Source of the DNA: Oikopleura dioica
Taxonomy: Eukaryota; Animalia; Chordata
Assembly (NCBI GenBank): GCA_907165135.1
Contig: OU015566.1
Coordinates: 8,804,001-8,868,000 of the forward strand
DNA length: 64,000 nucleotides
Direction: 5' to 3'
This document shows, in pieces, positions 4,131 to 30,082 of this stretch (positions are counted from its first letter, which is position 1; each line of letters opens with the position of its first letter). The notes under the pieces were generated by a model. It was not told the DNA's origin. It saw only the letters and a program-made list of their open reading frames with translations, and did not search any database. The position numbers and the translations under genes are program-made.

Positions 4131-4658
4131 ATGAAGTTGAGTATTTTTGCCACTGTTGCCGCCGTTGCCACCGCTGAAGAGGGACGAAAAGTTCCCCCAC
4201 GAACACCGGAACAGCGATTGAACAAACTGAAGAAATTCACCGCCGAGTGGACTAGCACCAACTTGAAAGAGCATCAGGCCAAACACTGGGCCGGTAAATT
4301 CGAGAACAACATCGCTAAGATCCAAAAGCGATTCAAGCACTGCGGATTCTTCGACCCCAATGTTCCCAACGGCGGCCCACGACCAGTCGAATCAGCCCGT
4401 CGACGACGAAACGCTGAAGACGATGATCTCGGCTTTGATGAGCTCCTCGATGGTGACGATGAAGTTATTGACACCCGATACGACAAGAACAACCCAATCC
4501 GAGGCATCAAACAAATCACCAAGGCCTTCGAAAAGTGGTCCAAGCGATACATCGCCGACTGCAAAAAGCAGCCAGCGACACAGGTCGGCAGAAACAAGCT
4601 CTGGTATTCTAAGCTTGTCGCTTTGCTCCAACGAAACATGGAACGAAGCCGCCAATAA
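4131..4658 (+). CDS. Intronless secreted orphan protein, 175 aa
   Basis: ATG ORF with signal peptide MKLSIFATVAAVATA, a basic helical N-half, an RRRR site, an acidic linker and a second basic helical half. AT-rich UTR-like flanks. Confidence 0.8.
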   Translation: MKLSIFATVAAVATAEEGRKVPPRTPEQRLNKLKKFTAEWTSTNLKEHQAKHWAGKFENNIAKIQKRFKHCGFFDPNVPNGGPRPVESARRRRNAEDDDLGFDELLDGDDEVIDTRYDKNNPIRGIKQITKAFEKWSKRYIADCKKQPATQVGRNKLWYSKLVALLQRNMERSRQ

Positions 4659-4914
4659 CCTCTTGTCAATACTGTAATTATCAATCTTCCCTGGGTGTGA
4701 CGTCAACTAAAAATTCAAATAAAACAAAAAAATTAAACATCTTCTTGTCTTTCTTTGCATTTTTGGCAGCACTGTTTTCAGCCTTTCAACGCATTCTTAT
4801 TCACAATTGTTGTCTTTCAAATGGAGAAGTATTATCTCTCATAACTTGTGTTATTCCAATGCAAGCACTTAGTTCTTACCGAAAGTATTAAGAATGAGGT
4901 AGTTTTCGGTGAAC

Positions 4915-7900
4915 ATGGCTCCTAATAAGGAGGAAAAGAAAGCCGCTAAGCGTGAGCGCATTGAAATCGAACGAGTTAAAAATCTCCCAACAGGTAACTT
5001 TCCACCTAAGTAGAGAAAACTTGACACCTTTTAGTCTTTTTGAGTAAAACGAATGAAGATTTTATTGTTTTACTGTGGCCAGCAAAGAAAGGAGAGGGAG
5101 AAAAACGACTCCGCGATGTTATTCGTAAGTTTGACAAGCGGAACTCGATTGATCTGTTATTAGATTACTCAAACATCTGGGAGATCCAAGCGATAGATGA
5201 TGGACTTACTGTATTTGTTCGATTCGGCAATGAGCTTGCTCATCCGACGAAGATCAACGCTGTTTGTGAAACGATCGAAGAAAAGAAGCGCCTGTTAGAT
5301 AGCATAAATTTCCGACGCGACAAGGATATTTGTCTTAGTTACTATGACATGATGCGCGTTTCCTATGATCAACTGAATGAATACGCTGAAGATATCAATG
5401 TGGAAGAAGTTGGCAAGTCCTTCCGTCTCAACTCGCGTCGCAAATATCAAACTGCTTTCAGAGCATGTACGCCTAACGTCGAGCAATATCTCCATTCAAA
5501 AACGTGGGAATCGTGGCGGCAACTTGCAGAAACTCTTTGTCCCCGAGAAGATATTAAGAAAGTCTGGCAAGAGGTCCTTGACGAATACAAGGTCGAGCAG
5601 GGAAAAGATCTTCCTCTCGTGAGCTTCGTAAACTGGCTCAACGAAACGATGCGGGACGAAAGGCTCAACGAAATTCTTTCGCCACCATTTACGATTGACG
5701 CTGATGTGAATCCGGAAAAGAACGGCGTTCCACAGATCCTTCAGAACATAGCAGACATTCACGGGTTCAAAATCGAGGACTTGAGCAGAGTCGACTACCG
5801 AACCTTCAAGGCGTTTATCGAATGGGAAACTGCTGTAAAATCAGATACATGGCTCAAAGTTAAAATCGAAACGATGGACTTTCCTCTTTCTCACTACTGG
5901 ATCGCCTCATCCCACAATACGTACTTAACGGGAAGGCAGCTAGGTGGAGAAAGTACGGTTGAAATATATCGCCAGGTGCTGCTTTCAGGATGTCGATGCA
6001 TCGAACTTGACTGCTGGGATGGGAAAAATGCGAACAAGGTAATTCAAAATTGGATAGAATAACTCAACCCCAGCGTTGCTCGAACGTTGCATTCTGAATC
6101 TGAACTTTTCTTTCTAGGGCGAGCCGATTATCACTCACGGAAATGCATTTTGCACAGAAGTAATGTTCATCGATGTAATTAAGGAAAGCCGATAGAAATG
6201 ATAAAACAACCGGGCTACTGGAGATCGAAGTATCTCTAAAAGAGATGAGACTGTTTTTTGTAGAAACTTCCTCTTGAATTCGAAGAAGAAAAGCACTTAA
6301 TCAAACCATGATGTAATCTTTACTGACTTCGAAACTTAGAAGCAACTTGGATAACAACAGTTAAAAATAATTTCGAATCGGTAATTAGGCAATTAACGAG
6401 ACGGCGTTTATGGCATCTGATTATCCAGTTATCCTATCGTTCGAAAACCACTGCTCGAAACCGAATCAACTTAAAATGGCCAACTACTGCGCTGGTGAAT
6501 AATGCTTTTGCAATGGAAATGAAATTATGACACTTGAAGTTGAAAATATTTTTAGAAATTTTTGGCGATGCTTTGCTTTCGCAGCCCCTGCTAAATCATC
6601 AGCTCGAGCCTGGGATAGACCTTCCTAGTCCAGCAATGCTGAAGGAATGGGTTTAATATTGGAAACAGTTTGTCTATCTTACTAAATTCTAGCGCGTCTT
6701 TTAGTAGCGACGAAATATGTTTCTTCATTGAATTTGGACAGTAAAAGCCTCCTTGCGTGTCATTTTGTAAACCCAACGTCCAGGGCCGGATCATCATCAA
6801 AAACAAAAAGCTCAGCCAGGCCGAAGAAACCACGATGTTGAACGCTTATTACGACGGACAGACGGATATCGTCCTGGCAGACGATCATAACGAAGAAAAT
6901 ACAGCAGATTACGATCAAATGAAAAACATGAACAAGAATCAGAAAAAGAATGAAACGGGCTCTGGCGAACAAAACTCGGAAAATACCGATAACACGTCTG
7001 AAACGGAAAAGTCTGTCGTCTACGATCTTCAAGGAGGGTTTTCACATAAACTAAGCAAGATCAAATTTGAGAATAGAAAAGTGGAGAGGATATTTCTATG
7101 CTTCGTTTACTTTTGTCGATTTTTTCACGAGGTATTACGGAATATGATCGATGTGGAATCCCCGTTTTAGTCAAGCACACGTCCTCGACGACAAAATCCA
7201 CCCGGTTCTATCAGCAATGATTAATTACTGCACCTCCGTGCGCTTTCCCGGCTTCGAGGAATCCTGGAATAACAACAAGCGCTACCAAATGTCGAGTTTT
7301 TCCGAAACGCAGGGTCTGAGCCACCTGGGTTCACGATCGCAGGAGTTGGTGTTATACAATGCCCGGCAGCTATCGCGTATCTACCCCAAAGGTCAACGTA
7401 TAGATTCATCGAACTACAACCCAACTGTCTTCTGGTCAGCCGGTTGTCAATTGGTGTCGCTCAATTATCAAACGCCAGACGAGCACTTTCAACTAAATCA
7501 AGGACGCTTTATGTCCAACGGAAGATGCGGCTATGTTAAGGGCTTTTAATCGCGACTTTATCTTTTCTTCTCGCACTTTTTGCCAGGAAATTGGCTCATG
7601 ATTTCGCTTATCTAATATAAGAGCCCTTGTCCAGTGCTCAAGCCGAAATTCATGGTAGAAACGCTCAAGAACCAGTACGACCCCTTTGGTGAGCGTTTGA
7701 TTCATCAAGTGCTCGCTGCTAGTTACGAGATTACTGTCATCTCGGGAATGTGGCTCGGCACCACCGATAATGTATACATTTCGATGGATTTACACGGTCT
7801 TCCGGCCGATTGCGTTACAAAGTTTAAAACGAAGAAGTCTAAAGGAACGAGTTCATAAACGCGGCGACACTTCGTCAACTTTCGCAATTGAAAAATGTAA

Positions 7901-12420: not shown

Positions 12421-13512
12421 ATGTCTGATGTTGATGAAGTTCTGTTGGAAGAGTCTGGAGCTGAGAACGACTTAGACGTAATTTAGCTTGACAATTTACT
12501 GGCAAATTATTCATTACTTCTTTTTAGGCATCGCTGGAGAACGACGACGCTGAAGATGACCCCGTAAGTTGGGGGTCGATACCCCAACCAATGATGCTCG
12601 AAATCTAGTCCCAGTTTTCTGTAGTCCTTGATTTCCGATAATTTTCATACCAAAAGAGCCATTGGATCGAAAAAAAACAAATTCAAAAAAATAAAGCTTT
12701 AGCAATTTTCATCAGATCCAAAAGATGCCACTTTATAGGCGCAAAAGAGCCATTCCCTCGCCTTTTCACGAAATTATATTTTGATGAATAAAAGATGCCA
12801 AAATCAGTTGAAATAATGTGATCAATCAATAGGAATTGGAAGCCATCAAGGAAAGAGTCAAGGCCATGGAAGCTGAGGCGGAGAAACTCAAGGAGCTACA
12901 GTCAGAGGTCGAAAGCCAGATGAGCATGGGCGACGGTAAGAAATATTCGATTTCTTTTATTTCATGAATATTTATACAAGCTGGTTCAGCGCCTATGGGA
13001 TCTGCAAACTTCCCTACGTTAGAGGAAAAGGTCGACGCTGACAACAGATCGATTTACATCGGACAGGTTGGCTTTCTATTGTGAAAATCCTGAAGGCCAA
13101 TTTTAAACATATCTTAGGTCGATTACTCGGCAACCGCAGAAGAACTTGAGCAACACTTTCACGGTTGCGGCGCGCTCAATCGAGTGACCATCCTCTGCGA
13201 CAAGTACTCTGGGCATCCGAAGGGCTTTGCTTACATTGAATTCACGGAGAAGGAGTCAGTTGACGCGGCGATCGCTCTTGATGGATCGATGTTCAGGGGC
13301 AGGCAGATTAAAGTCATGCCCAAGAGAACGAACAAGCCGGGCGTCAGGTAATTTTGATGTACTGAATGCATCATCAATTCGTTTTTTCTAGCTCAACCGA
13401 TAGAGGAGGCTTCCGCGGACGTGGAAGAGGCCGTGGCCGAGGCTTTTATGGTCGTGGTCGAGGACGAGCAATGTATAGAGGACGCGGTCGCGGTGGCTAT
13501 GCACCTTATTGA
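12421..13512 (+). CDS. PABPN1: Nuclear poly(A)-binding protein 1
   Basis: Acidic N-terminus, DP|[23 protein letters not shown] coiled coil, RRM (RSIYIGQ|[18 protein letters not shown]...[10 protein letters not shown]) and an RG-rich tail ending YAPY*. Confidence 0.96.
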
Positions 13513-13941
13513 GCATTACTGCTGAAGACTAAACTGTAAAAATGAACAGTTTCTGTGCTTTCAACTGATCCAAAATTTCCAAAAAGTTAGTTTAAATTTT
13601 CAATTTTAATGTCCTCAATCTCTGTCCTGCCACTTCTCTATTCTAATTTTACTTTTTACTTGTTTTCTGAACTTTTAAGCCAATTTCATAATTAGATATC
13701 ATATTCTACTGTGAAAAAAGTTCGAACTTAGAAAGTATTGGTTCGAACTTGAAGGTGTTTTCTATTGCAGGTCGATATCTTTTTTCTAGCAGGTCAATCT
13801 TCACGCACCAAATCTTAACCGCCTTATCAGTAGCCTTGATCTCTTACTATTTCTGTGGCGCATTCTAGCAGCATACAATTTATAAAGCACCGTTGAGAGA
13901 CTTTAGAAAGACATATTCTAAAGAACAGTCTGAGAATCGAA

Positions 13942-14786
13942 ATGAGGATTTTAGGTTTTTTCTTCGCATTTGCAGCTGCAATTGATGAAATGCTGCTTAT
14001 GATGATGCTGCAGCACCAGCAAGGAGTGATGAACCCTTCCCAGGCTAGCCAAATCAATCACATTCTCCCACTTCTTCTCATGGAAGAAACAAGTGCGAGC
14101 TCGGAGAACTCAGAGCTGATGCTCATGTTGATGATCCAGGGAATGGGAAGTGATGTGAACAATGCTCTTCCTTTCTTGCTTCTTGGCGACTCGGGTGATG
14201 ATGGCTACGATTTTACAACGTTCTTCTTGTTTTCGTCGATGGCACAACGAGACTGCTCCGTTTCTACTTCAAATCAATTTAATTCGCTTCTGCCAATGAT
14301 GCTTATGGATAGAGACCAGGATACCAGTGACTTGATGCTCATGATGATGATGCAGGTTAAATAAGTCAATTTTCAATATTTTTTCATTTCTTAATTTAGA
14401 CAATGGGAGGAGAAGGGTCGGTTCCTATTCAGCAACTTATGCCATACATAATCATGTTTGGCGATAATGAGGACTCTGAAGACCCAAACACTCTTCTGCT
14501 CATGGTTTTGATGAGTTCGATGACGGGTGGAATGTCCAACCCGCAAGGATTCAACAACAACTTCAATATTCTCCTTCCCCTCCTTCTCTTACAAGATGAC
14601 GAGGGCAGCTCTCTAGACAATAACATGCTCGTACTCTTGCTCAGTTTGCAAAGCCAGGCTCCCGGAACTGCAATGGGACCCGATAAAATGCTCCCTCTCT
14701 TGCTGATGGAAGATGGCGATGACAACCAAAATGTTATTCTGCTCATGATGATGCTCGGCAACAAACAACCCTGTGAGCCTTATTGA
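13942..14786 (+). CDS. Secreted Met/Leu-rich repeat protein (2 exons, intron 14356-14399)
   Basis: Signal peptide MRILGFFFAFAAA. Two ORFs are joined in frame by a 44-nt GT-AG intron. Repeated LLPxLLM and LMLMMM blocks are separated by D/G/S-rich linkers. Confidence 0.8.
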
Positions 14787-14984
14787 TTCGCGTCATACCT
14801 GCCTTCGTAATAATATTTCTTTACTTTTCTTCCTTCAATAAAATTCAAACAAGATTTTTTGTGACCTTTATTTCTATGAAAATATAGCTTGGATTTTATG
14901 TACAAGGAGACTTTAACCAATCGTGGAAAGACGTGAGTTTTTTCTTATAAAAATAGATTCTTTTTAAGACACTCGGTGAGATTG

Positions 14985-15830
14985 TTATTCTAGCTTCGGT
15001 TGGGAGACGTAGACTTTTTCTTCTTTCTTTTGCTTGACTCGTCTATTTTGGAACCATATTTTTACCTTAAAAATGTAAGTAAACAAAGAGATGTATAATT
15101 TGTACCTGTTTCTCGGACAATCCAAGAGATTGCGCTATTCTTACACGCCGCAGTCGAGTCAAATATGAATCCGTGAGAAATTCATTCTCTAATTCGAGCA
15201 ATTGCCGACCAGAAAACGCTGTTCGGCTCCGTTTTCGATCATCTGACAGTAGATCCCCGGCTGCCTCCAAAGAAGTTGATGTTGACGGTATTTCATGGCC
15301 GCGCACGGATTCACGGTGATATGGTGTATTTTGGCTTCTTTGGCCGACTTCTGAAAGAAACGTTTGTATCAGAAAAATTAAAAGTTTATTACCTTTGATT
15401 TTTGTCATGTTGTTATATGCGGCGGAGGGAATTTGAATACCAGCAGGTCGATGAGGTCCAAGGAGAGCAGAAGTTTGCTGCTGCTGATGGATCAAAAAGA
15501 GGAAGTTTGAAATCGCCTGCGATTGAATCCGCTGATAAAAATCAGTGGTGGAGGAAGGCTGGTAAAGAGTCGTTGTTGTTGCCGGTTGCGTAAGAGAAAA
15601 TGGCGCGGCAACTGTTGCTGGGCTCCCTTCTGAAGCATCAGATGGCTCTAGCTGTTCCGTTGAGGTGTCAAGTGGCTCAGGATCTAGAATAAATTGTTCA
15701 GGAAATATCTTTCGAACATAAACTTACCAGTCTCGGTCTTGACGGCCGATTCTTTGACCAGATTTTCGATCAAAAAGCGTTTTTCAACATTTTTGAGATG
15801 TTGCTCTTCTATGGAACTGATACTCAAACA
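14985..15830 (-). CDS. GSX: Gsx (ParaHox) homeobox gene; start codon unresolved
   Basis: Homeodomain [44 protein letters not shown]|[14 protein letters not shown]. The [26 protein letters not shown] pattern is Gsx-type. An N-terminal RFLIENLV resembles the FxIxxL repression motif. Confidence 0.82.
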
Positions 15831-22039: not shown

Positions 22040-25000
22040 ATGGTGAAAGTTCTAGCGCCGCCGGTTCAGGCGGTCGGCGATCAAAATAAGTACAGAGCGA
22101 TTGAACTTGACAATGGAATGCAATGTCTTCTTATATCAGTTGGGGATGAGACCAAGTAAATGTTAAATGTGTAAAATCAATAACACTAAATAGCCGTGAA
22201 GCCGACTACTGCTGCGCGGCGGTAAATGTAGGAATCGGAAGTAATGATGAACCGCACGAAATTCCCGGTCTTGCTCATTTTTGTGAGCATATGCATGCTC
22301 TTGGTAGTGGAAAGTACCCCGGCGAGGCGTATTTCAAAAGTTTTGCAGGAGAGAATGGAGGAAAAACAAATGCTTTTACGGCTTCTGAAGGGAAAGTCTC
22401 AAAAGTTATTCTCGTTTCAGAGATATCGCATTTTATGACGAACAATATTGACTTCTATAAAGCTACTTGCTACCAGCTTGCAATTATGGGCCAACAGAAT
22501 TATGAAAAACTACTGGATATATTCTCAAATCTATTTATTGATGCACAATTCGAAGAATCGGGAACAGAACGTCAACTTGCTGCTGTCGATTCAGAGTACG
22601 ATCTCCGAAAAGAATCTTTTGCTGTAGGAATGTTATTCACATCAAATGTCCCAATGCTGGATATTTTGGTTTTATTTACGATTGATATAACGAGTTGAAT
22701 AATTTGAAAATAGAACTCGTTTTGAAAGAAGCTTTGATGACAGAAGATCACCCCATGCAACATTTTGGCGCTGGAAACCGATATTCTATCTGGGAGTATC
22801 CCCGCGAAGAATTCGGCCTTGATCCACTGGAAGTTTTACATAAGTGGTATCGAAGAAACTACTGCTCTCCTTGGATGAAGCTTGTTCTTCAAGCAAACTT
22901 GTCTATCTCAACGCTTCAAGATTATGCCGAAAGGTACTTTGGTCAGATCCCCACTCGTGGTCAGGCTAAACCTGATCTCCACAAAGAACGACACGGCCCG
23001 CATCATTCAATTTCACTTGAAAAGATCGTCAAAATCATCCCTGTAAGCTTTGTTTTCATAAATTTTATTATCATTTCTCAGCCTGGAAACGGACCAGACG
23101 CGATGCAAATGTACTTTCCTTTACCGAGCTATTTGAACAACATCTCCTGCGATCCCATTCGATTCCTAGAATATGTGCTTACATACGAAGGCCCTGGTTC
23201 GCTCAATAGTTACCTTCAGCAACACAATCTTGGCATGCTTCAAGCTTACCAATGGGTAAGTTAAAACAAAGTCATAAATTTACCTTTCTTCAAGTTCGGC
23301 GCAACCCGATATCAAAGCGACCTGACAATAATGGTCCAAGGAATAAATATTCAGCAGTGGAAGACAATTTACGATATTGTCTGGAGCTATTTCGATATGG
23401 TTCTCAATTTATTTACTTGATTGAAATAATTTGATAAATGATAAAATTGAAATGAGAATCCGCCTGAAGATTTCATCAAATCAACGAGTTCTTCCCAGCG
23501 CGAAAAAGTGTTCGACCAAATGTCGAGTAAGTACGAAGAATAACATACTCATCCATTGAATCGTTAGCGATCGCAAACGAGCGTTGGCAGACCAAACAGC
23601 CTGAGAATCCTTACCACAACGTTGGCGATACTGCTTACCAAATGCATCAGCGTCGATTTTTCGGAACTAAATGTTGGCTTGGATACACGCCGTTTCAATT
23701 CAATAATGATACCATCAACAAGTGTTTGAGAGAAATAAAACCGAGCAACTGCGCTGTTCTTCTCCGAAGTCAGAGTTTCGCTGGAGAAGGCGGTTTCGAG
23801 GAACCGGTCATATATTTTAATGCATAAGTAAGCTTTCAGTTATCATATTGAGTAACTGATGGTGACCAAGATGTCGAGGAAGAATACTGGGTGGGAACCA
23901 AGTATAAGGTCGTCGACAACAATAATCTTTATAAACCTAAGGATAGTTTTTCGATCATCAACAATATCAATTACGATGAACATATTGAAAAATTTGTCAA
24001 GGCTCATCCTTGGCCACGTGAATTCAGTCTGCCAGAAGAAAATAAGTACGTCATCAAAAATCTTCCTCAAAAAGTTGATGAATCGCAATCCTGGCCCTCG
24101 CCCAAACGAATTCTCAAATCGACTACTTCCGAACTTTGGTTCAAGACTGATTCTAAATTCAATATTCCGAGGGCCTATATTTGCGTCAATTTCTTGACCA
24201 ATTTGGCTTCGAAGAGTATCAAAAATCAAGTAATGATGGATATGCTTCTTTTTGCAACTGCGGGTCAGTGTCAGAATAGGTACTCCTCCTTGATTTCAAG
24301 GATCTCGATTGATGAATTCTTAGTCATGATTTCACTCTTGCTGCCGAAGCTGGAATAGATTGCAGAGTTTTGGGAATCTTCGCGGACGCGGCTCAAGACA
24401 ATCGTGTGACGAACAATACTCGTCCTGTTGGAATCATTGTCTCTGGATATGATCCGAAACTTCCTGAAATAATTCTTCGTGCGATGGACATGCTCTTGAA
24501 ATTCAGACTACACAATATGGATGTCCTTGGGCAGCTAATAAATCAATTGCAGGGGGCTTACCAAGGTTACTTCTAACGACAAACATCGCGTTTTAGTTTT
24601 TTAGGGACAATGATAAGCGATCCTCTTCGAGTTTGCTCTGAGCTTGGCACCCGACTTCTCATCAACAATTATTATTCGCTTCCAGAAAGACTCGAATTCA
24701 CTCGAAATATTTTGCGATCTGATTTTGGGTAACATATAAATTCTTCCCATTTTCATTATGAATGATTCAGGCTTCTTCAGCAATTCATTCACGAGTTCCA
24801 TCAGTTCCAAAATCAGCTGATCACCAAGTCTTACTATCAAGTTCATATCGAAGGAAACATGACCCAAAAGAAGCTACGAGTGTTTTCCGACAAATAACGA
24901 AGCTTGCTCAAGCAAAGGGACCTGGTTCTTTCAAAGGTATAAGATCTTCAAGATTGCCCATTCATGGTTCAAAGTGAAATCTGCCACTTCAACTCCGAAA

Positions 25001-25888
25001 ATCCGCCACCATGCGAGCCCAGTCGCGTGTAAAGTAGCGGGTATGGATCCGAACTCTGAAATGACTTTCTGTTCCCTCACATGGGTCCTTGGCAAACTTC
25101 AGTCCTCCAGAAAACTTTCGGCACTTTCTACTTTTGTTGAAAGTATGATGCACCAGCCGGCATTTGATTATTTGAGGACGAAGAAAGCGCTTGGTTACAT
25201 TGCTGGTTCAAGAGAATGGTCGAGAAGTGGCGTCAAGGAACGGATGGAAAAGCCTGAACTTAATCATTTGCGAGGCGTAATATTTATATCCGATTAAGGC
25301 AATCGCTATTGAATGCAACACAAATGTCAATAGAGTCTCTGTCGAAGAAGTAGAAGCTCTCATGACCAAGTGCGCCGTCTTGATGTTGAAGCAGTTCGAA
25401 GCGCTTTCTGATGAGCAGTACAAGGTAGGGCGATTATTATTTGAGCATGCTAGTTAACTAAATTTCAAGACTTCAAAGGCTGCTTATGTGAAACTTCTTG
25501 CAAAACCAGCGGATAGCATGGATCATTACTTTGGAACAAACCAGATTGAAATTTACGATGGTACTCAACGTTTCAGGTACGGAATAAAAAGTCAAATCTA
25601 GGATCAACTGTTTTTAGCCGGAAAGAAGAAGAGTCTGCTGAGCTGATGAAAGTAACAAAGCAAGAGTTTGTCGACTTTTTCAAAGGTGAGTGAAATCTAT
25701 TGGATGATCAAACCAATGTTAAATCCCTCATAGAATACATCATCAACAACAAACGACGAATGTTCGTTGCCGTTGAGGGATGTTCCCAGCACACCCGACC
25801 TGATGGGCTTTTCAAGCACTTACCTCTTGAAAATGCAGACTACACTCAAATATCAGACTTTGCATCGATGTCTTCTTCCTTCTACTAG
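22040..25888 (+). CDS. M16A zinc peptidase (insulysin/nardilysin-like), tandem copy 1
   Basis: KYRAIELDNGMQCLLIS, inverted zinc motif PGLAHFCEHM, AVDSEY third ligand, LWFKTDSKFNIPRA and FDYLRTKKALGYI. Confidence 0.9.
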
Positions 25889-26157: not shown

Positions 26158-29100
26158 ATGGTGAAAATTCTGGCACCACCAGTTCAGGCGACTGGTGATC
26201 AAAACAAGTACAGAGCGATTGAATTGGACAATGGCATGCAATGTCTTCTCATATCTGTCGGCGATGAAACCAAGTAACTCTTAATTGATAATTATTCTTA
26301 CATAAAAAAAGTCGCGAAGCTGATTACTGCTGCGCGGCGGTAAGTGTAGGCATTGGTAGCATTGATGAACCACATGAAATCCCCGGTCTGGCTCATTTCT
26401 GCGAGCATATGCATGCCCTTGGTAGTGGAAAGTACCCCGGAGAGGCTTATTATAAAACCTTTGTTGGAAAGAATGGCGGGAAAACGAACGCTATGACTGC
26501 TGAAGAAGGAAATTTTTCAAAAAAAAAAGAATTTCTATTGAAAAGAAACTGTTTTGAAAGGTAGTATGACCTCAAAATTCGGCCAAGTATAATTTGATTT
26601 TTTTTATTTTTCCTAACACTACTCCTAACCCGGGGGCTTCGCCCCCCGGGACCCCCCTAGGTAAAAGAACACAGTTCCTAGCCCTAAGGCCTAACCTAGG
26701 GGCTTCGCCCCCTTCGAACCCCCCCCTAACACTAACCTAAAATAGGGGTGGCCGAATTTTGAGATCAAACTACGTTTTGAAATGATTATAGCAACTTGTT
26801 ATCAAATGGCGATCATGGGACAGCAAAACTATGAAAAACTCCTGGATATATTTTCGAATCTTTTTATCGACGCCCGAATGGAAGAATCCGGGACAGAACG
26901 ACAATTGAGTGCGGTCGATTCTGAGTATGATCTTCGCAAGGCAGGTATGACAGGAAGACTTGTATTGCAAGAAGCTTTGATGACGGAAAACCATCCGATG
27001 CGACATTTTTGCGCTGGAAACCGATATTCTATCTGGGAGTATCCACGAGAAGAGTTCGGACTTGATCCTTTGAAAATTCTCGACGAATGGTATCAGAGAA
27101 ATTATTGTTCTCCTTGGATGAAGCTTGTTCTTCAAGCCAACTTGCCTATGTCAAAACTTCAAGAATATGCGGTTAAATTCTTTGGCCAAATACCTACCCG
27201 TGGACAGACCGAGCCTGGACTTCACAAGGAACCTAACGGACCACATCATTCTATCTCGCTAGAAAAAATTGTGAAAATCGTCCCTGTAAGATACTTTTCT
27301 TATTAAGTTTATCTCAATATTTATAAGTTTGGAGCCGAGAAAGACGCGATGAAAATGTATTTTCCACTGCAAAGCTACTTGGAGAAGATCTCCTGCGATC
27401 CAGTTCAATTTTTAGAGTATGTGCTCTGTGATCAAGGGCCTGGTTCGCTCAGTCGTTACCTCGAAGAGCGCGATCTGGGCAAAGTGGAAGCTTTCAAATG
27501 GGTACTGTAAGCTCAATGAGAAGGGTTTAAATTCATTTCAGATTGGTGCAACTCGGTATCAAACCGATCTGACAATAATGGTCACAAGAATTGATATTCA
27601 ACAGTGGAGAATAGTGTACAACATCATTTGGAGCTATTTAGATATGGTTTTCATTTTACTTCGTAATTAATATGATATTAATAATATCCCCGTAAAAACA
27701 CATGAGAATCAATTGCAACATTTTATTAAATCGACGAGCTCGTCTCAGCGCGAAAAAGTATTCAATCAACTGGCTAGTGAGTAAAAATACCTGAGAATTG
27801 CTATTTTGAATTTTCTAGCAATCACGAACGAGAAATGGCACACCAAACAGCCTTCGAATCCGTATAACAGAGTTGTAGACACTGCTTATCAAATGCATCA
27901 GCGTCGATTCTTCGGAACAAAATGTTGGCTTGGTTACACGCCCTTTGAGTTCAACAACGATACCATCAACGAGTGTTTGAGAGAAGTCAAACCGAGTAAC
28001 TGCGCTATTCTTCTACGAAGTTCGACTTTTGCAACAGAAGAAGGTCTTCAGGAAGAAAAATGGGTTGGAACCAAATACAAAGTCGTGGAAAATAAAGAGC
28101 TCTATGTACCAAAGGAAAGTTTTTTTTATTTCCTTATTATTATTAAATCATTATAACTTGGATAAACTTATTGAGTCGAAGCCATGGCCTTCTGAATTTC
28201 GTTTGCCAGAAGAAAATAACTACATCACTAAAAATCTCCCTCTAAAAGTCGATGGCTCACAATCATGGAGATCGCCGAAGCGCATTCAAAAATCTGCAGA
28301 TTCCGAACTTTGGTTCAAAACAGACTCAAAATTCAAAATCCCCAGGGCATATATTTGTGTCAGCTTTCTGAACAAATTGGCTTCAAAGAATCTCAAGAAT
28401 CAAGTTATGATGGATATGCTTCTGTTCGGAATTAGAGATCTGTATCAGAGCAGGTACTCTATTATTGACTTCCAATAGCAGTGATCTTCATTTTTAGCCG
28501 GGATTTCACTCTTGCTTCTGAAGTGGGAATAGATTGCCAAATCCTGGGAACAATTTTTGATGTAACGAAGAACAACGATCACGATAGCTCTATCGTTAAA
28601 AAGCCCCATGTCACCAACGATACTCGACCTGCCGGAATACTCGTTTCTGGTTATGATTCCAAACTTCCGGAAATAATTCTTCGAGCTGTTAATATGCTCT
28701 TAAATTTCAAAATCGAAAACAACGATGGTCTTGAAGAACTTGTCGATCAATTGCAAAGAGCTTACCAGAGTATTTTTTTCCTGAAAAAAAACTTTCTATA
28801 ATTTCTTTAGGTACAATGATATGCGATCCGATCCGAGTTTGCAATGAGCTAGGCACTCGTCTTCTGGTCAACAATTATTACTCGCTCCCAGAAAGACTTG
28901 AATTTATACAAGAAGTTGTGCTCTCAAATCCCTCGTAATATTTTTTCTTTTAATTGATTTTTATGACAATCTAAGCCCAAGCGAGTTTATGGAAGAGTTC
29001 CATCATTTCCAGAAAGAATTTATTAGAAAATCGTTCTATCAGGTTCATATCGAAGGAAACATGACCGAAAAAGAAGCAACTAGTGTTTTTCGGCAAATAA

Positions 29101-30082
29101 AAGATCTTACAAAAGCAAAGGGACCGGGCTCTTTCAGAGGTAAGAATTTTTGCGCCTAGGAAATTAGTAAAATCATCCAGTTAAATCGACTATATCACCT
29201 CCGAAAATCCGCCATCATCCAACTCCCATCGCTTGTAAAGTAGCGGGCATGAATCCAAACTCTGAAATGACTTTCTGCTCCCTCGCATGGGTTCTTGGCA
29301 AACTTCAATCATCAAGAAAACTGTCAGCGCTTTCCACTTTCGTCCAAAGCATGATGCACCAGCCAACGTTTGACTGGTTGAGAACTAAAAATGCTCTTGG
29401 TTATATCGCCGCTACGAGGGAGTGGTCAAGAAATGGAATCAAGGTCGATAAACAGAAATTGTATTCGCCGAGATATATTTATTTATTAAGGCAATTGCAA
29501 TCGAATGCAACACAAATATTAACCGGGTCACTGTTGAAGAAGTAGAAGCACTAATGACCAAGTGCACAACATTGATATTGAAGCAGTTCGAAGCACTCAC
29601 TGAAGAGCAGTACAAAGTAGCGCAATAATAATTTAAGCAAACCGGAAAATTTTATTTCAGTCATCAAAAGAAGCTTATGTGAAACTTCTTGCTAAGCCAG
29701 CCGAAAGTATGGACAGCTACTTTGGAGCAAATCAGGTCGAGATATTTGATGGAACTCAGCGTTTCAGGTAAAAATGCAAGTTTTAAGAATGAAAGTCGTC
29801 TAAAAGCAAATTTAGACGGAAAGAAGAGGAATCATCTGAGCTGCTGAAAGTGACAAAAGAAGAATTTGTTCGGTTCTATAAAGGTACGCCACATCAATTT
29901 TATCATTTCACGAGTTTACAGAATATATCATCAAAAATGAACGGCGAATATTTGTCGCTGTCGAGGGTTGCTCCAAGCATACACAAGCGAATGGACTCTT
30001 CAAACACTTGCCTCTCGAAAACACAATCAAAGACTACGAGCAAATCTCAGACTTCGGAGCAATGCCATCAGCGTTTTATTGA
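26158..30082 (+). CDS. M16A zinc peptidase (insulysin/nardilysin-like), tandem copy 2
   Basis: Colinear paralog of copy 1 with the same motifs (PGLAHFCEHM, AVDSEY, LWFKTDSKFKIPRA, FDWLRTKNALGYI). One junction near 28115-28175 is unresolved. Confidence 0.86.
26560..26774. mobile_element. Non-autonomous DNA transposon (MITE) in intron 2 of M16 copy 2
   Basis: 25-nt TIRs GTAGTATGACCTCAAAATTCGGCCA (26561-26585) and TGGCCGAATTTTGAGATCAAACTAC (26749-26773) match at 23/25. A flanking direct repeat (G)TTTTGAAA on both sides gives an 8-9 nt TSD. Two internal GGGGCTTCGCCCC hairpins. Absent from the equivalent intron of copy 1. Confidence 0.88.

Follow-up and report, generated by a model that had tools for sequence, protein, structure and literature searches.

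GA-AG introns of Oikopleura dioica are reportedly a subject of Denoeud et al. 2010. Their published donor consensus is AG|GAA, which has genome-wide RNA-seq support, and they do not in general have a GT close by (Frey and Pucker 2020, PMC7072748); the human FGFR GA 5' splice site requires a canonical GT at a distance of six bases, in the account of Brackenridge et al. 2003 that is cited in PMC7072748. Introns with unusual edges are also known among those derived from transposons, which carry target duplications and inverted ends in Fritillaria borealis, Micromonas and dinoflagellates (PMC11282704). As to the disappearance of introns, a microhomology model of intron loss has been published (van Schendel and Tijsterman 2013, PMC3698931), and classical end joining is reportedly missing from O. 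dioica (Deng et al. 2018, as cited in PMC11067885), so that the microhomology route should be more likely in this animal.

Here we present a non-GT intron that interrupts one of two tandem M16 peptidase genes of Okinawa-lineage O. dioica. The window, namely the whole stretch of DNA that was analyzed, comprises 64,000 nucleotides of contig OU015566.1; positions refer to it unless another sequence is named, and all features described lie on its forward strand. Our analysis indicates that the interruption is probably an old spliceosomal intron of the M16 peptidase gene, which the second copy lost by a clean deletion. What was suspected to be the birth of an intron becomes its probable death.

The Tandem Genes and the Interrupted Site

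Copy 1 extends from start to stop codon over 22040-25888 and has 17 introns by our reading, while its tandem paralogue lacking the focal intron, copy 2, occupies 26158-30082. Both genes were delineated from the map of open reading frames, the paralogue alignment and Pfam, and protein and Pfam searches run with single exons as queries found PF00675, PF05193 and PF16187 in both, which makes them M16 peptidases. An apparent 1-nt frameshift is present in copy 1 downstream of the focal intron, and an A-run near 24863-24867 may reflect an assembly error or a null allele. The paralogue alignment also displays an insertion in one intron of copy 2 relative to copy 1.

The focal intron separates an exon at 23568-23800 from a 21-codon exon at 23879-23941. 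Along all 77 whole codons at 23570-23800 the protein of copy 1 equals that of L016, a diverged copy-1-type orthologue from marine metagenomes, with about 13% of the nucleotides being different. Around the intron, exon identity between copy 1 and L016 is 95.8% at codon positions 1 and 2 and 54.5% at position 3; since the third position has diverged and the first two have been kept, the downstream and upstream exons are under purifying selection.

Under the GA...AG model the intron measures 78 nt (23801-23878), with orthologous introns of 80, 75 and 68 nt, and splicing it out yields ...GFE|EEYW..., which aligns without gaps to the ...GLQEEKW... of copy 2. The sequence-only reading had claimed that copy 1 is interrupted by 78 nt with an in-frame TAA where copy 2 is continuous, and that the intron edges lie within a perfect direct repeat; both observations were reproduced. 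The interruption was seen again in sequence and alignment, the homologous site of copy 2 (28041-28060, junction 28051|28052) being uninterrupted, and the exact 8-nt repeat, TCGAGGAA, is found at 23796-23803, spanning the GA donor, and at 23874-23881, spanning the AG acceptor. Removal of the interval is needed because of the in-frame TAA (23825-23827) and because the orthologous intervals of 80 and 68 nt are not multiples of 3, while selection preserves the protein encoded downstream. Directly after this TAA comes a canonical-looking donor hexamer, GTAAGC, and the whole segment 23825-23833 is kept in three copy-1 lineages. The intron has GA at +1,+2 and AG at its 3' end, with flanks that match the AG|GAA consensus; it is from the gapless homology that we infer a GA donor at 23801. 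Per-exon protein searches for junction-spanning fragments derived from transcripts returned matches only to genomic metagenome ORFs. A canonical GT-AG model of 60 nt, at 23793-23852, was discarded, none of L016, L017 and L005 having it. Known RNA families gave a single match of chance level in and around the focal intron, to a miRNA (E 4.7), so a snoRNA or mirtron reading of the intron was not adopted.

Age of the Intron and Its Probable Loss from Copy 2

A metagenome locus search, with a three-sequence alignment as the query, recovered the intron at the same site in two orthologues of diverged copy-1 type from marine metagenomes, L016 (80 nt) and L017 (75 nt). It is present as well in a copy-2-type orthologue, L005 (68 nt), a 669-bp metagenome scaffold without flanks. 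Being common to copy-1 types and to the copy-2-type L005, the intron is probably older than the paralogue split, and would therefore have been lost from copy 2 of this genome. The quartet (copy 1, L016)|(copy 2, L005) is supported by 34 informative sites versus 3 and 4 for the other arrangements, and the AU test rejects the alternative in which copy 1 pairs with copy 2 and L016 with L005 (p 2e-6). Third-position differences amount to 0.27 between copy 2 and L005, 0.40 between copy 1 and copy 2, 0.41 between copy 1 and L005, and 0.46-0.53 for pairs with L016; they are clock-like, hence copy 2 and L005 are taken as sisters, the paralogue split being ordered by these distances and not by outgroup rooting. 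The AU test does not reject placing the root on the copy-2 branch (p 0.50), and a single gain is possible under that root. Scoring orthologues had been proposed for telling gain from loss: the presence of the intron in L016, L017 and L005, all from metagenomes, contradicts a recent gain in copy 1, sharing among orthologues having been named beforehand as grounds for refuting it. The empty site of copy 2 is best read as derived.

In evolutionary terms, the intron would have been present before the two tandem copies diverged, and then kept by copy 1 as well as by the copy-2-type gene of another lineage. Its loss from copy 2 would correspond to the clean deletion of one copy of the repeat together with the 70 nt between the repeats, most likely through genomic end-joining with the 8-nt boundary repeat as microhomology, perhaps a joining of the repeats at the very edges of the intron. 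This route had already been envisaged from the sequence, and what stands of it is that copy 2 is missing exactly one repeat plus the interval, that the adjacent introns are kept and that the sister gene carries an 8-nt repeat; these features argue for the route without amounting to proof.

Terminal Stems in Non-GT Introns

Between the focal intron and its counterparts in L016 and L017, identity is 79-81%, on par with the exons (about 80%), whereas other introns reach 32-73%. Independent folds predict a terminal stem with a 5' arm at 23806-23811, which includes the GT at +7, and a 3' arm at 23862-23867, ending 11 nt before the acceptor. Fold and inverted repeat further indicate an internal hairpin (23836-23859; arms 23836-23842 and 23853-23859), the loop of which varies among lineages. 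CTGAT at 23856-23860, which lies between this hairpin and the 3' arm at a distance of 19 nt from the acceptor, is a likely branch site, invariant in L016 and L017. The terminal stem is invariant within copy-1 lineages and the 3' half of L005 is unalignable (MAFFT, RNAalifold), so that stems are reported here from independent folds and not from column-wise covariation. With the terminal duplex defined as the first ~16 nt of an intron against its last ~24 nt, its energy comes to -9.4 kcal/mol for the copy-1 types (z -2.3) and to -9.3 kcal/mol for L005 (z -3.5).

Such pairing is not restricted to the focal intron, for the ends of all other non-GT introns in these genes also pair in a short stem, and no such stem closes any of the 27 GT-AG introns. 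The terminal duplex ranges from -3.7 to -11.0 kcal/mol in the non-GT introns measured (12 of 12), and its mean is -7.7 kcal/mol in 11 non-GT introns versus -3.1 in the 27 GT-AG introns (MWU p 6e-6), a non-GT sample that is small and partly non-independent, since the focal intron enters it four times and a second intron three times. Moreover, GA and GT donors replace each other at two other positions. At position A, introns of 60-65 nt have GA and a stem in copy 1 (23942-24001), copy 2 (28115-28175) and L005 (402-466 of the scaffold), while those of L016 (6375-6414) and L017 (233-271), of 39-40 nt, have GT and no stem. At position B, GA and a stem are found in copy 1 (25238-25298) and L017 (1511-1568), GT without a stem in copy 2 (29444-29490).

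The focal intron thus appears to belong among the stem-closed non-GT introns of this genome. Its 6-bp stem, pairing +6..+11 with -17..-12, would draw weak splice sites together, and the internal hairpin would be placed beside the likely branch site. A bolder proposition is that non-GT introns constitute a distinct selected device, in which the terminal stem presents weak GA...AG sites to the spliceosome and hides GT decoys in their vicinity, with matching bases at exon and intron ends being maintained, as an animal counterpart of the stem-closed introns of euglenids; we regard this as unlikely. If it were true, the M16 pair would offer a ready test set, in which the same position may carry a stemless GT intron, a GA intron closed by a stem, or no intron.

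The Boundary Repeat and Alternative Explanations

The boundary repeat measures 8 nt in L005 and copy 1, whereas the 27 GT-AG introns average 1.6 nt, and yet it exceeds chance only modestly. The AG|GAA consensus of GA donors, the AG acceptor and a conserved Glu codon dictate five of its eight bases; the other 3 nt are free, and their chance match is ~0.02-0.05 per intron. An ordinary GT-AG intron of copy 1 (24937-24974) has a boundary repeat of 7 nt, and another exact 8-mer direct repeat, unrelated, occurs within the same 400 nt as the focal one. The three remaining bases may reflect chance or the relic of an older event, the rest being presumably a by-product of donor consensus, acceptor and Glu codon. 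The proposal that exonic AG|G duplications are a source of ready-made non-GT introns finds no support here, for the repeat is mostly consensus and coding sequence, and GA and GT donors alternate as simple point variants at positions A and B.

How could one copy have the intron and the other not? The sequence-only reading had considered that copy 1 gained the intron once the genes had duplicated, a transposon, an introner or break-repair filler having been inserted, with the 8-nt repeat as target duplication and copy 2 as the empty site. Such an event would leave an exact repeat at both edges, as is seen; moreover, the intron ends pair like short inverted repeats, and two outgroup contigs have no intron at this site. 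The sharing of the intron with L016, L017 and the copy-2-type L005 contradicts it, as do the five bases forced by consensus and coding and the offset of the pairing arms, which do not adjoin the repeat (2-5 nt on the left, 6-11 nt on the right). The dispersed copies that the claim invited one to look for did not appear either: in the 64 Mb genome (64,281,565 bases, 19 contigs) the 78 nt matched only themselves at E up to 10, and their local similarity to 150 nt of flank was not above that of shuffles. We hold this gain to be highly improbable, and a transposon-derived intron of introner or MITE type was rejected on the same lines, having no related copies and no abutting terminal inverted repeats and being neither recent nor lineage-specific. 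An origin by tandem exon duplication was discarded as well, with in-register identity outside the repeat of 0.19-0.33. If instead the intron was lost, recombination with reverse-transcribed spliced mRNA could have removed it, and the precision of the loss, which the GA model makes exact to a single base, would be expected, as would the absence from copy 2 of a second copy-1 intron, 22628-22713. A clean deletion leaves no scar, and its outcome is therefore the same as that of a very short cDNA-templated conversion. However, copy 2 retains both introns that flank the focal site (27777-27818, 233 nt upstream, and 28115-28175, only 63 nt downstream), for which reason we favor a genomic deletion; it also retains the four introns lying between the two missing ones, where a cDNA tract would give contiguous loss, and the study behind the microhomology model found reverse transcriptase to have no prominent role in metazoan intron loss (PMC3698931). 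Loss through cDNA consequently seems unlikely to us, and deletion by end-joining remains the preferred account.

The choice of the donor bears on the same deletion. GT is far preferred over GA in most eukaryotes, and a canonical model of 72 nt can be drawn from the GT at 23807, the +7 position, to the AG at 23878; this GT is in frame and conserved in four of four lineages. Copy 1 would then encode two extra residues, the repeat would be unrelated to the splice sites, and copy 2 would have lost the intron along with 6 exonic bases, in frame, a sequence that deletion between the 8-nt repeats would likewise yield. Against this model, the conserved F and W would be 12 residues apart, compared with 10 in copy 2 and in three outgroup proteins, and the donor would have C at +3, unlike all 27 GT donors of these genes; the +7 GT falls, furthermore, within the predicted terminal stem, and it is the GA site that agrees with the AG|GAA consensus (PMC7072748). 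The canonical donor is accordingly a doubtful candidate, though one with a real chance of being correct. With the GA donor retained, one may still ask if selection or some copying process maintains the boundary repeat because it contributes to intron recognition, beyond consensus and chance. The free bases match at both edges while being different in the two types, TCG in copy-1 type and TAA in L005, whose 3' intron halves cannot be aligned, and the joint chance of both matches would be roughly 1e-3 if they were independent. One repeat base has, nevertheless, already been lost in L017 without visible consequence, and the boundary repeat is only 2-4 nt in the other seven non-GT introns scored; the 7-nt chance repeat of the GT-AG intron mentioned above also tells against selection. 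We know of no spliceosome contact which needs the end of the exon to equal the end of the intron. A selected repeat is, all considered, distinctly improbable.

Comparison with Described Intron Systems

The locus would provide one clean example of microhomology intron loss in which the retained sister intron is known, from a chordate in which classical end joining is reportedly missing. It also serves as a small natural experiment on the splicing, in O. dioica, of introns that depart from the GT rule. Like the GA-AG introns described for this species (Frey and Pucker 2020, PMC7072748), the focal one has an exonic AG before the donor and A at +3, and is short and located in a compact gene. It differs from them in its in-frame GT at +7, and its terminal stem and exon-level conservation are unmentioned in the literature that we found on them. 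With the microhomology model (PMC3698931) it shares the exact loss of a small intron, the retention of neighbours and the raised microhomology in the retaining relative (8 nt, in L005); here it is a single case between tandem paralogues, there a genome-wide statistic.

Transposon-derived introns (PMC11282704) resemble the focal intron in the direct repeat at both junctions, the pairing ends and the occurrence of non-canonical borders in a tunicate, but ours has no family of copies, is old and conserved, and its arms do not adjoin the repeat. The new introns of Daphnia (Li et al. 2009, as summarized in PMC3443670) likewise have short direct repeats at their edges, which that summary presents as repair scars; they are described there as recent and polymorphic, whereas the focal intron is common to diverged lineages. 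Conserved introns of Drosophila carry such edge repeats equally often, a warning given in PMC3443670. In human FGFR genes, the GA donor described by Brackenridge et al. 2003 (cited in PMC7072748) also has a GT 6 nt away, and since the GT of the focal intron is in frame at this distance from the GA donor, two in-frame products are possible; a point of difference is that folding places the GT of the focal intron inside a predicted stem.

The nonconventional introns of euglenids, as outlined in PMC11282704, are similar in that pairing near +4..+6 with about -8..-6 joins their ends, in having no clear pyrimidine tract, and in junction repeats resembling duplications, which blur the borders. According to the same outline, the dinucleotides at their ends are not fixed, and an unknown machinery releases them as circles; the G...AG ends of the focal intron and its branch-site-like motif point instead to the ordinary spliceosome.

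The M16 Intron and Its Boundary Repeat

The two genes for insulinase-type M16 peptidases, copy 1 (22040-25888) and copy 2 (26158-30082), lie in tandem on the plus strand, with Pfam PF00675, PF05193 and PF16187 matched by single exons of both. In copy 1, the 78 nt of 23801-23878 start with GA, finish with AG and contain a TAA in frame at 23825; once they are excised, copy 1 aligns gaplessly across the homologous point of copy 2 (28051|28052), where no interruption occurs. The 8-nt sequence TCGAGGAA is found twice, at the intron edges (23796-23803 and 23874-23881). The 78-nt interval, its edge repeats and the uninterrupted copy 2 had been described in the sequence-only reading and are indeed seen.

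How much should be made of the repeat itself? Introns of the GA-AG type with RNA-seq support in Oikopleura dioica have a conserved AG ahead of the donor and an A behind it (PMC7072748), so that AG|GAA is to be expected at the donor; on the acceptor side, the AG is required, and the GAA after it is a codon for Glu shared by all relatives. That leaves three free bases, which would match by chance with a probability of about 0.02 judging by composition, or up to 0.05 if the introns of both genes are the guide. They agree across both edges in copy-1-type genes and in L005, a metagenome contig of copy-2 type, with a sequence that differs between the types; if one of the two matches is a relic, as it may be, a chance of 0.02-0.05 applies to the other. 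Since one base of the repeat is gone in L017, a copy-1-type metagenome contig, and the seven remaining scored non-GT introns share just 2-4 nt at their edges, the free-base match is not taken as a rule. How long boundary repeats can be by background alone is illustrated by the ordinary GT-AG intron of copy 1 at 24937-24974, with a 7-nt repeat (TTCAAAG) that is not kept in L017 or copy 2, and one more exact 8-mer repeat, unrelated, occurs within the same 400 nt as the focal intron.

Relatives Carrying the Intron

Per-exon searches and one metagenome scan gave three contigs of O. dioica-like lineages. L016 spans 10 kb and shares synteny, at 70-75% identity, with the sequence lying upstream of copy 1; at the focal site it has an 80-nt intron with the same 8-nt repeat as copy 1. 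In L017 the intron measures 75 nt and the repeat 7 nt, and L005 (669 bp) has a 68-nt intron edged by another 8-mer, TAAAGGAA. Lengths of 80 and 68 nt mean that the intron has to be removed. The 77 residues encoded by the exon 5' of the intron are the same in L016 and copy 1 despite a nucleotide difference of about 13%, and over 495 coding positions the two are identical at 95.8% of codon positions 1+2 and 54.5% of position 3, indicating purifying selection on the gene either side of the intron.

More distant metagenome contigs, probably of other appendicularians (L006-L015), give a mixed picture that does not fix the ultimate age of the intron: five (L006-L008, L014-L015) are uninterrupted at the focal site, and L009-L013 have, by our reading, an intron of some 90 nt that is non-GT and offset by one base. 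In L009 this would be an AG...AG intron (560-655), with two other outgroup contigs intronless; the offset could be due to intron sliding or to parallel gain at a favoured site.

Other features of these genes deserve mention. A second GA-AG intron present only in copy 1 of the pair (22628-22713) is also old, occurring in L016 (about 4166-5147) with unchanged donor context and a length of about 1 kb. Past its match to position 24806, L016 (7232-9624) is homologous instead to 13423-15794 of the window, which would come from a within-gene rearrangement in the L016 lineage or else from chimeric assembly of the metagenome. In copy 2, intron 2 (GA-AG, 26509-26791) measures 283 nt owing to an inserted GC-rich, repeat-bearing element, its copy 1 counterpart being GG-AG and 72 nt long. 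Copy 1 is one base short in an A-run (24863-24867) relative to L017 and copy 2, shifting the frame between ...HIEGNMTQ and KEATSVF...; elsewhere copy 1 is intact and conserved. Either the allele is genuinely null or the Nanopore-based assembly has an error in this homopolymer.

Donor Choice

When all in-frame G...AG combinations around the site were enumerated in four lineages, only two donors were common to all, GA at 23801 and GT at 23807, both with the acceptor at 23878. A GT-AG model of 60 nt (23793-23852), attractive in the window genome alone, is missing from the other three lineages. The GT, at +7, sits within the 5' arm of a predicted terminal stem; its use leaves a spacing of 12 residues from a conserved F to a conserved W, compared with 10 in copy 2 and three outgroup proteins, and it has a C at +3, found in none of the 27 GT donors of these genes. 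GA at 23801 is favoured as the probable donor. Were GT 23807 used instead, copy 2 would still be a deletion product between the repeats.

Three GA donors have an in-frame GT 6-9 nt away, namely at 23807 (+7, focal), 25232 (-6 of 25238) and 28106 (-9 of 28115), and these canonical alternatives could possibly change the product by 2-3 codons. Within the focal intron, 23825-23839 comprises the in-frame TAA, then a donor-like GTAAGC and an acceptor-like pyrimidine-CAG, invariant in three copy-1 lineages. Splicing from this GTAAGC would truncate the protein after the second domain, and the motif may serve an alternative isoform or as a U1 landing site.

Gain in Copy 1 or Loss from Copy 2

The difference between the paralogues had been read either as a gain in copy 1, by insertion with target duplication, or as a microhomology-mediated loss from copy 2. 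A gain is at odds with the presence of the intron in L016, L017 and even the copy-2-type L005; the stem arms of the intron, moreover, are set back from the repeat. The proposed search for dispersed copies of the 78 nt across the genome (64,281,565 bases, 19 contigs) returned only the self-match; neither in-register nor local similarity to the flanking exons was found, and a search for RNA families matched none. Informative sites number 34 for grouping copy 1 with L016 and copy 2 with L005, against 3 and 4 for the other splits, and a grouping of the two window copies with each other is rejected by the AU test (p 2e-6). None of the five rootings, not even that on the copy 2 branch, is eliminated by the distant outgroups. 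Clock-like third-position differences (copy 2-L005 0.27, copy 1-copy 2 0.40, copy 1-L005 0.41, L016 pairs 0.46-0.53) make sisters of copy 2 and L005, copy 1 branching outside that pair and L016 outside all three, and a root on the copy 2 branch would need extreme differences in silent-site rate. With any other root, the intron would have been in the common ancestor and lost from copy 2. Over its first 25 nt, the L005 intron matches copy 1 at about 76% identity, near the 78% of the paralogous exons of the window, which argues for common descent over recent transfer. Judged on these comparisons, copy 2 very likely lost the intron.

How, then, was it lost? Copy 2 retains the introns 63 nt downstream (28115-28175) and 233 nt upstream (27777-27818), as well as four introns separating the focal site from the second missing one, which is not the contiguous pattern of cDNA-mediated loss. 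Deletion between the repeat copies would excise precisely the GA...AG unit; in the gene sister to copy 2, 8 nt of junction microhomology remain. The loss route thus fits the exact unit, the kept neighbours and the sister gene; the deletion step is what we infer, a scarless deletion being beyond proof by sequence. A microhomology model of intron loss is already published (PMC3698931), and, according to Deng et al. 2018 (as cited in PMC11067885), O. dioica depends on microhomology-mediated end joining. The difference between copy 1 and copy 2 is a new instance of a known process.

Conservation and Folding of Non-GT Introns

The focal intron is 79-81% identical to those of L016 and L017, as are the exons (79%), eleven other introns compared reaching 32-73%. 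Its conserved blocks are the first 12 nt, the stop codon with the donor-like hexamer 27 nt in, both arms of an internal hairpin (the loop being variable), a CTGAT that probably serves as branch site, and the final 27 nt. The four orthologous introns share one predicted folding plan of terminal stem and internal hairpin, which L005 reaches with other sequences in both helices; the z-scores of whole introns stay modest, between -1.0 and -2.2, so that any single fold is weak as proof. Pairing of intron ends was scored for 38 introns from both genes and their orthologues, taking the 16 nt at the 5' end against the 24 nt at the 3' end: mean energy was -7.7 kcal/mol in 11 non-GT introns versus -3.1 in 27 GT-AG introns (MWU p 6e-6, in a partly non-independent sample), and with one added, the 12 non-GT introns range from -3.7 to -11.0.

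Introns at the same position offer the cleanest contrasts. One position has GA with a stem in copy 1 (23942-24001), copy 2 (28115-28175) and L005 (402-466), at 60-65 nt, and GT without a stem in L016 (6375-6414) and L017 (233-271), at 39-40 nt; another has GA with a stem in copy 1 (25238-25298) and L017 (1511-1568) and GT without one in copy 2 (29444-29490). Because homologous positions can have GA in one gene and GT in another, no special event is required to give rise to a GA donor, and such two-state positions form a natural test set for non-GT splicing. At both, the GA state is about 20 nt longer. The 60 nt of 23942-24001 are in frame and stop-free, so a plain ORF reading calls them exon, yet they are an intron in every relative; removing them, with their GA...AG ends, brings back the outgroup spacing, and their terminal stem is the strongest of the set (-10.4 kcal/mol).

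Comparison with Known Intron Systems

In layout, the focal intron is like transposon-derived introns and like the stem-closed introns of euglenids (PMC11282704). Membership of a transposon family was rejected, given the lack of copies, arms set apart from the repeat, and an origin that is not recent. By its sequence, the focal intron fits the definition of the GA-AG introns published for O. dioica, and it would work as they do.
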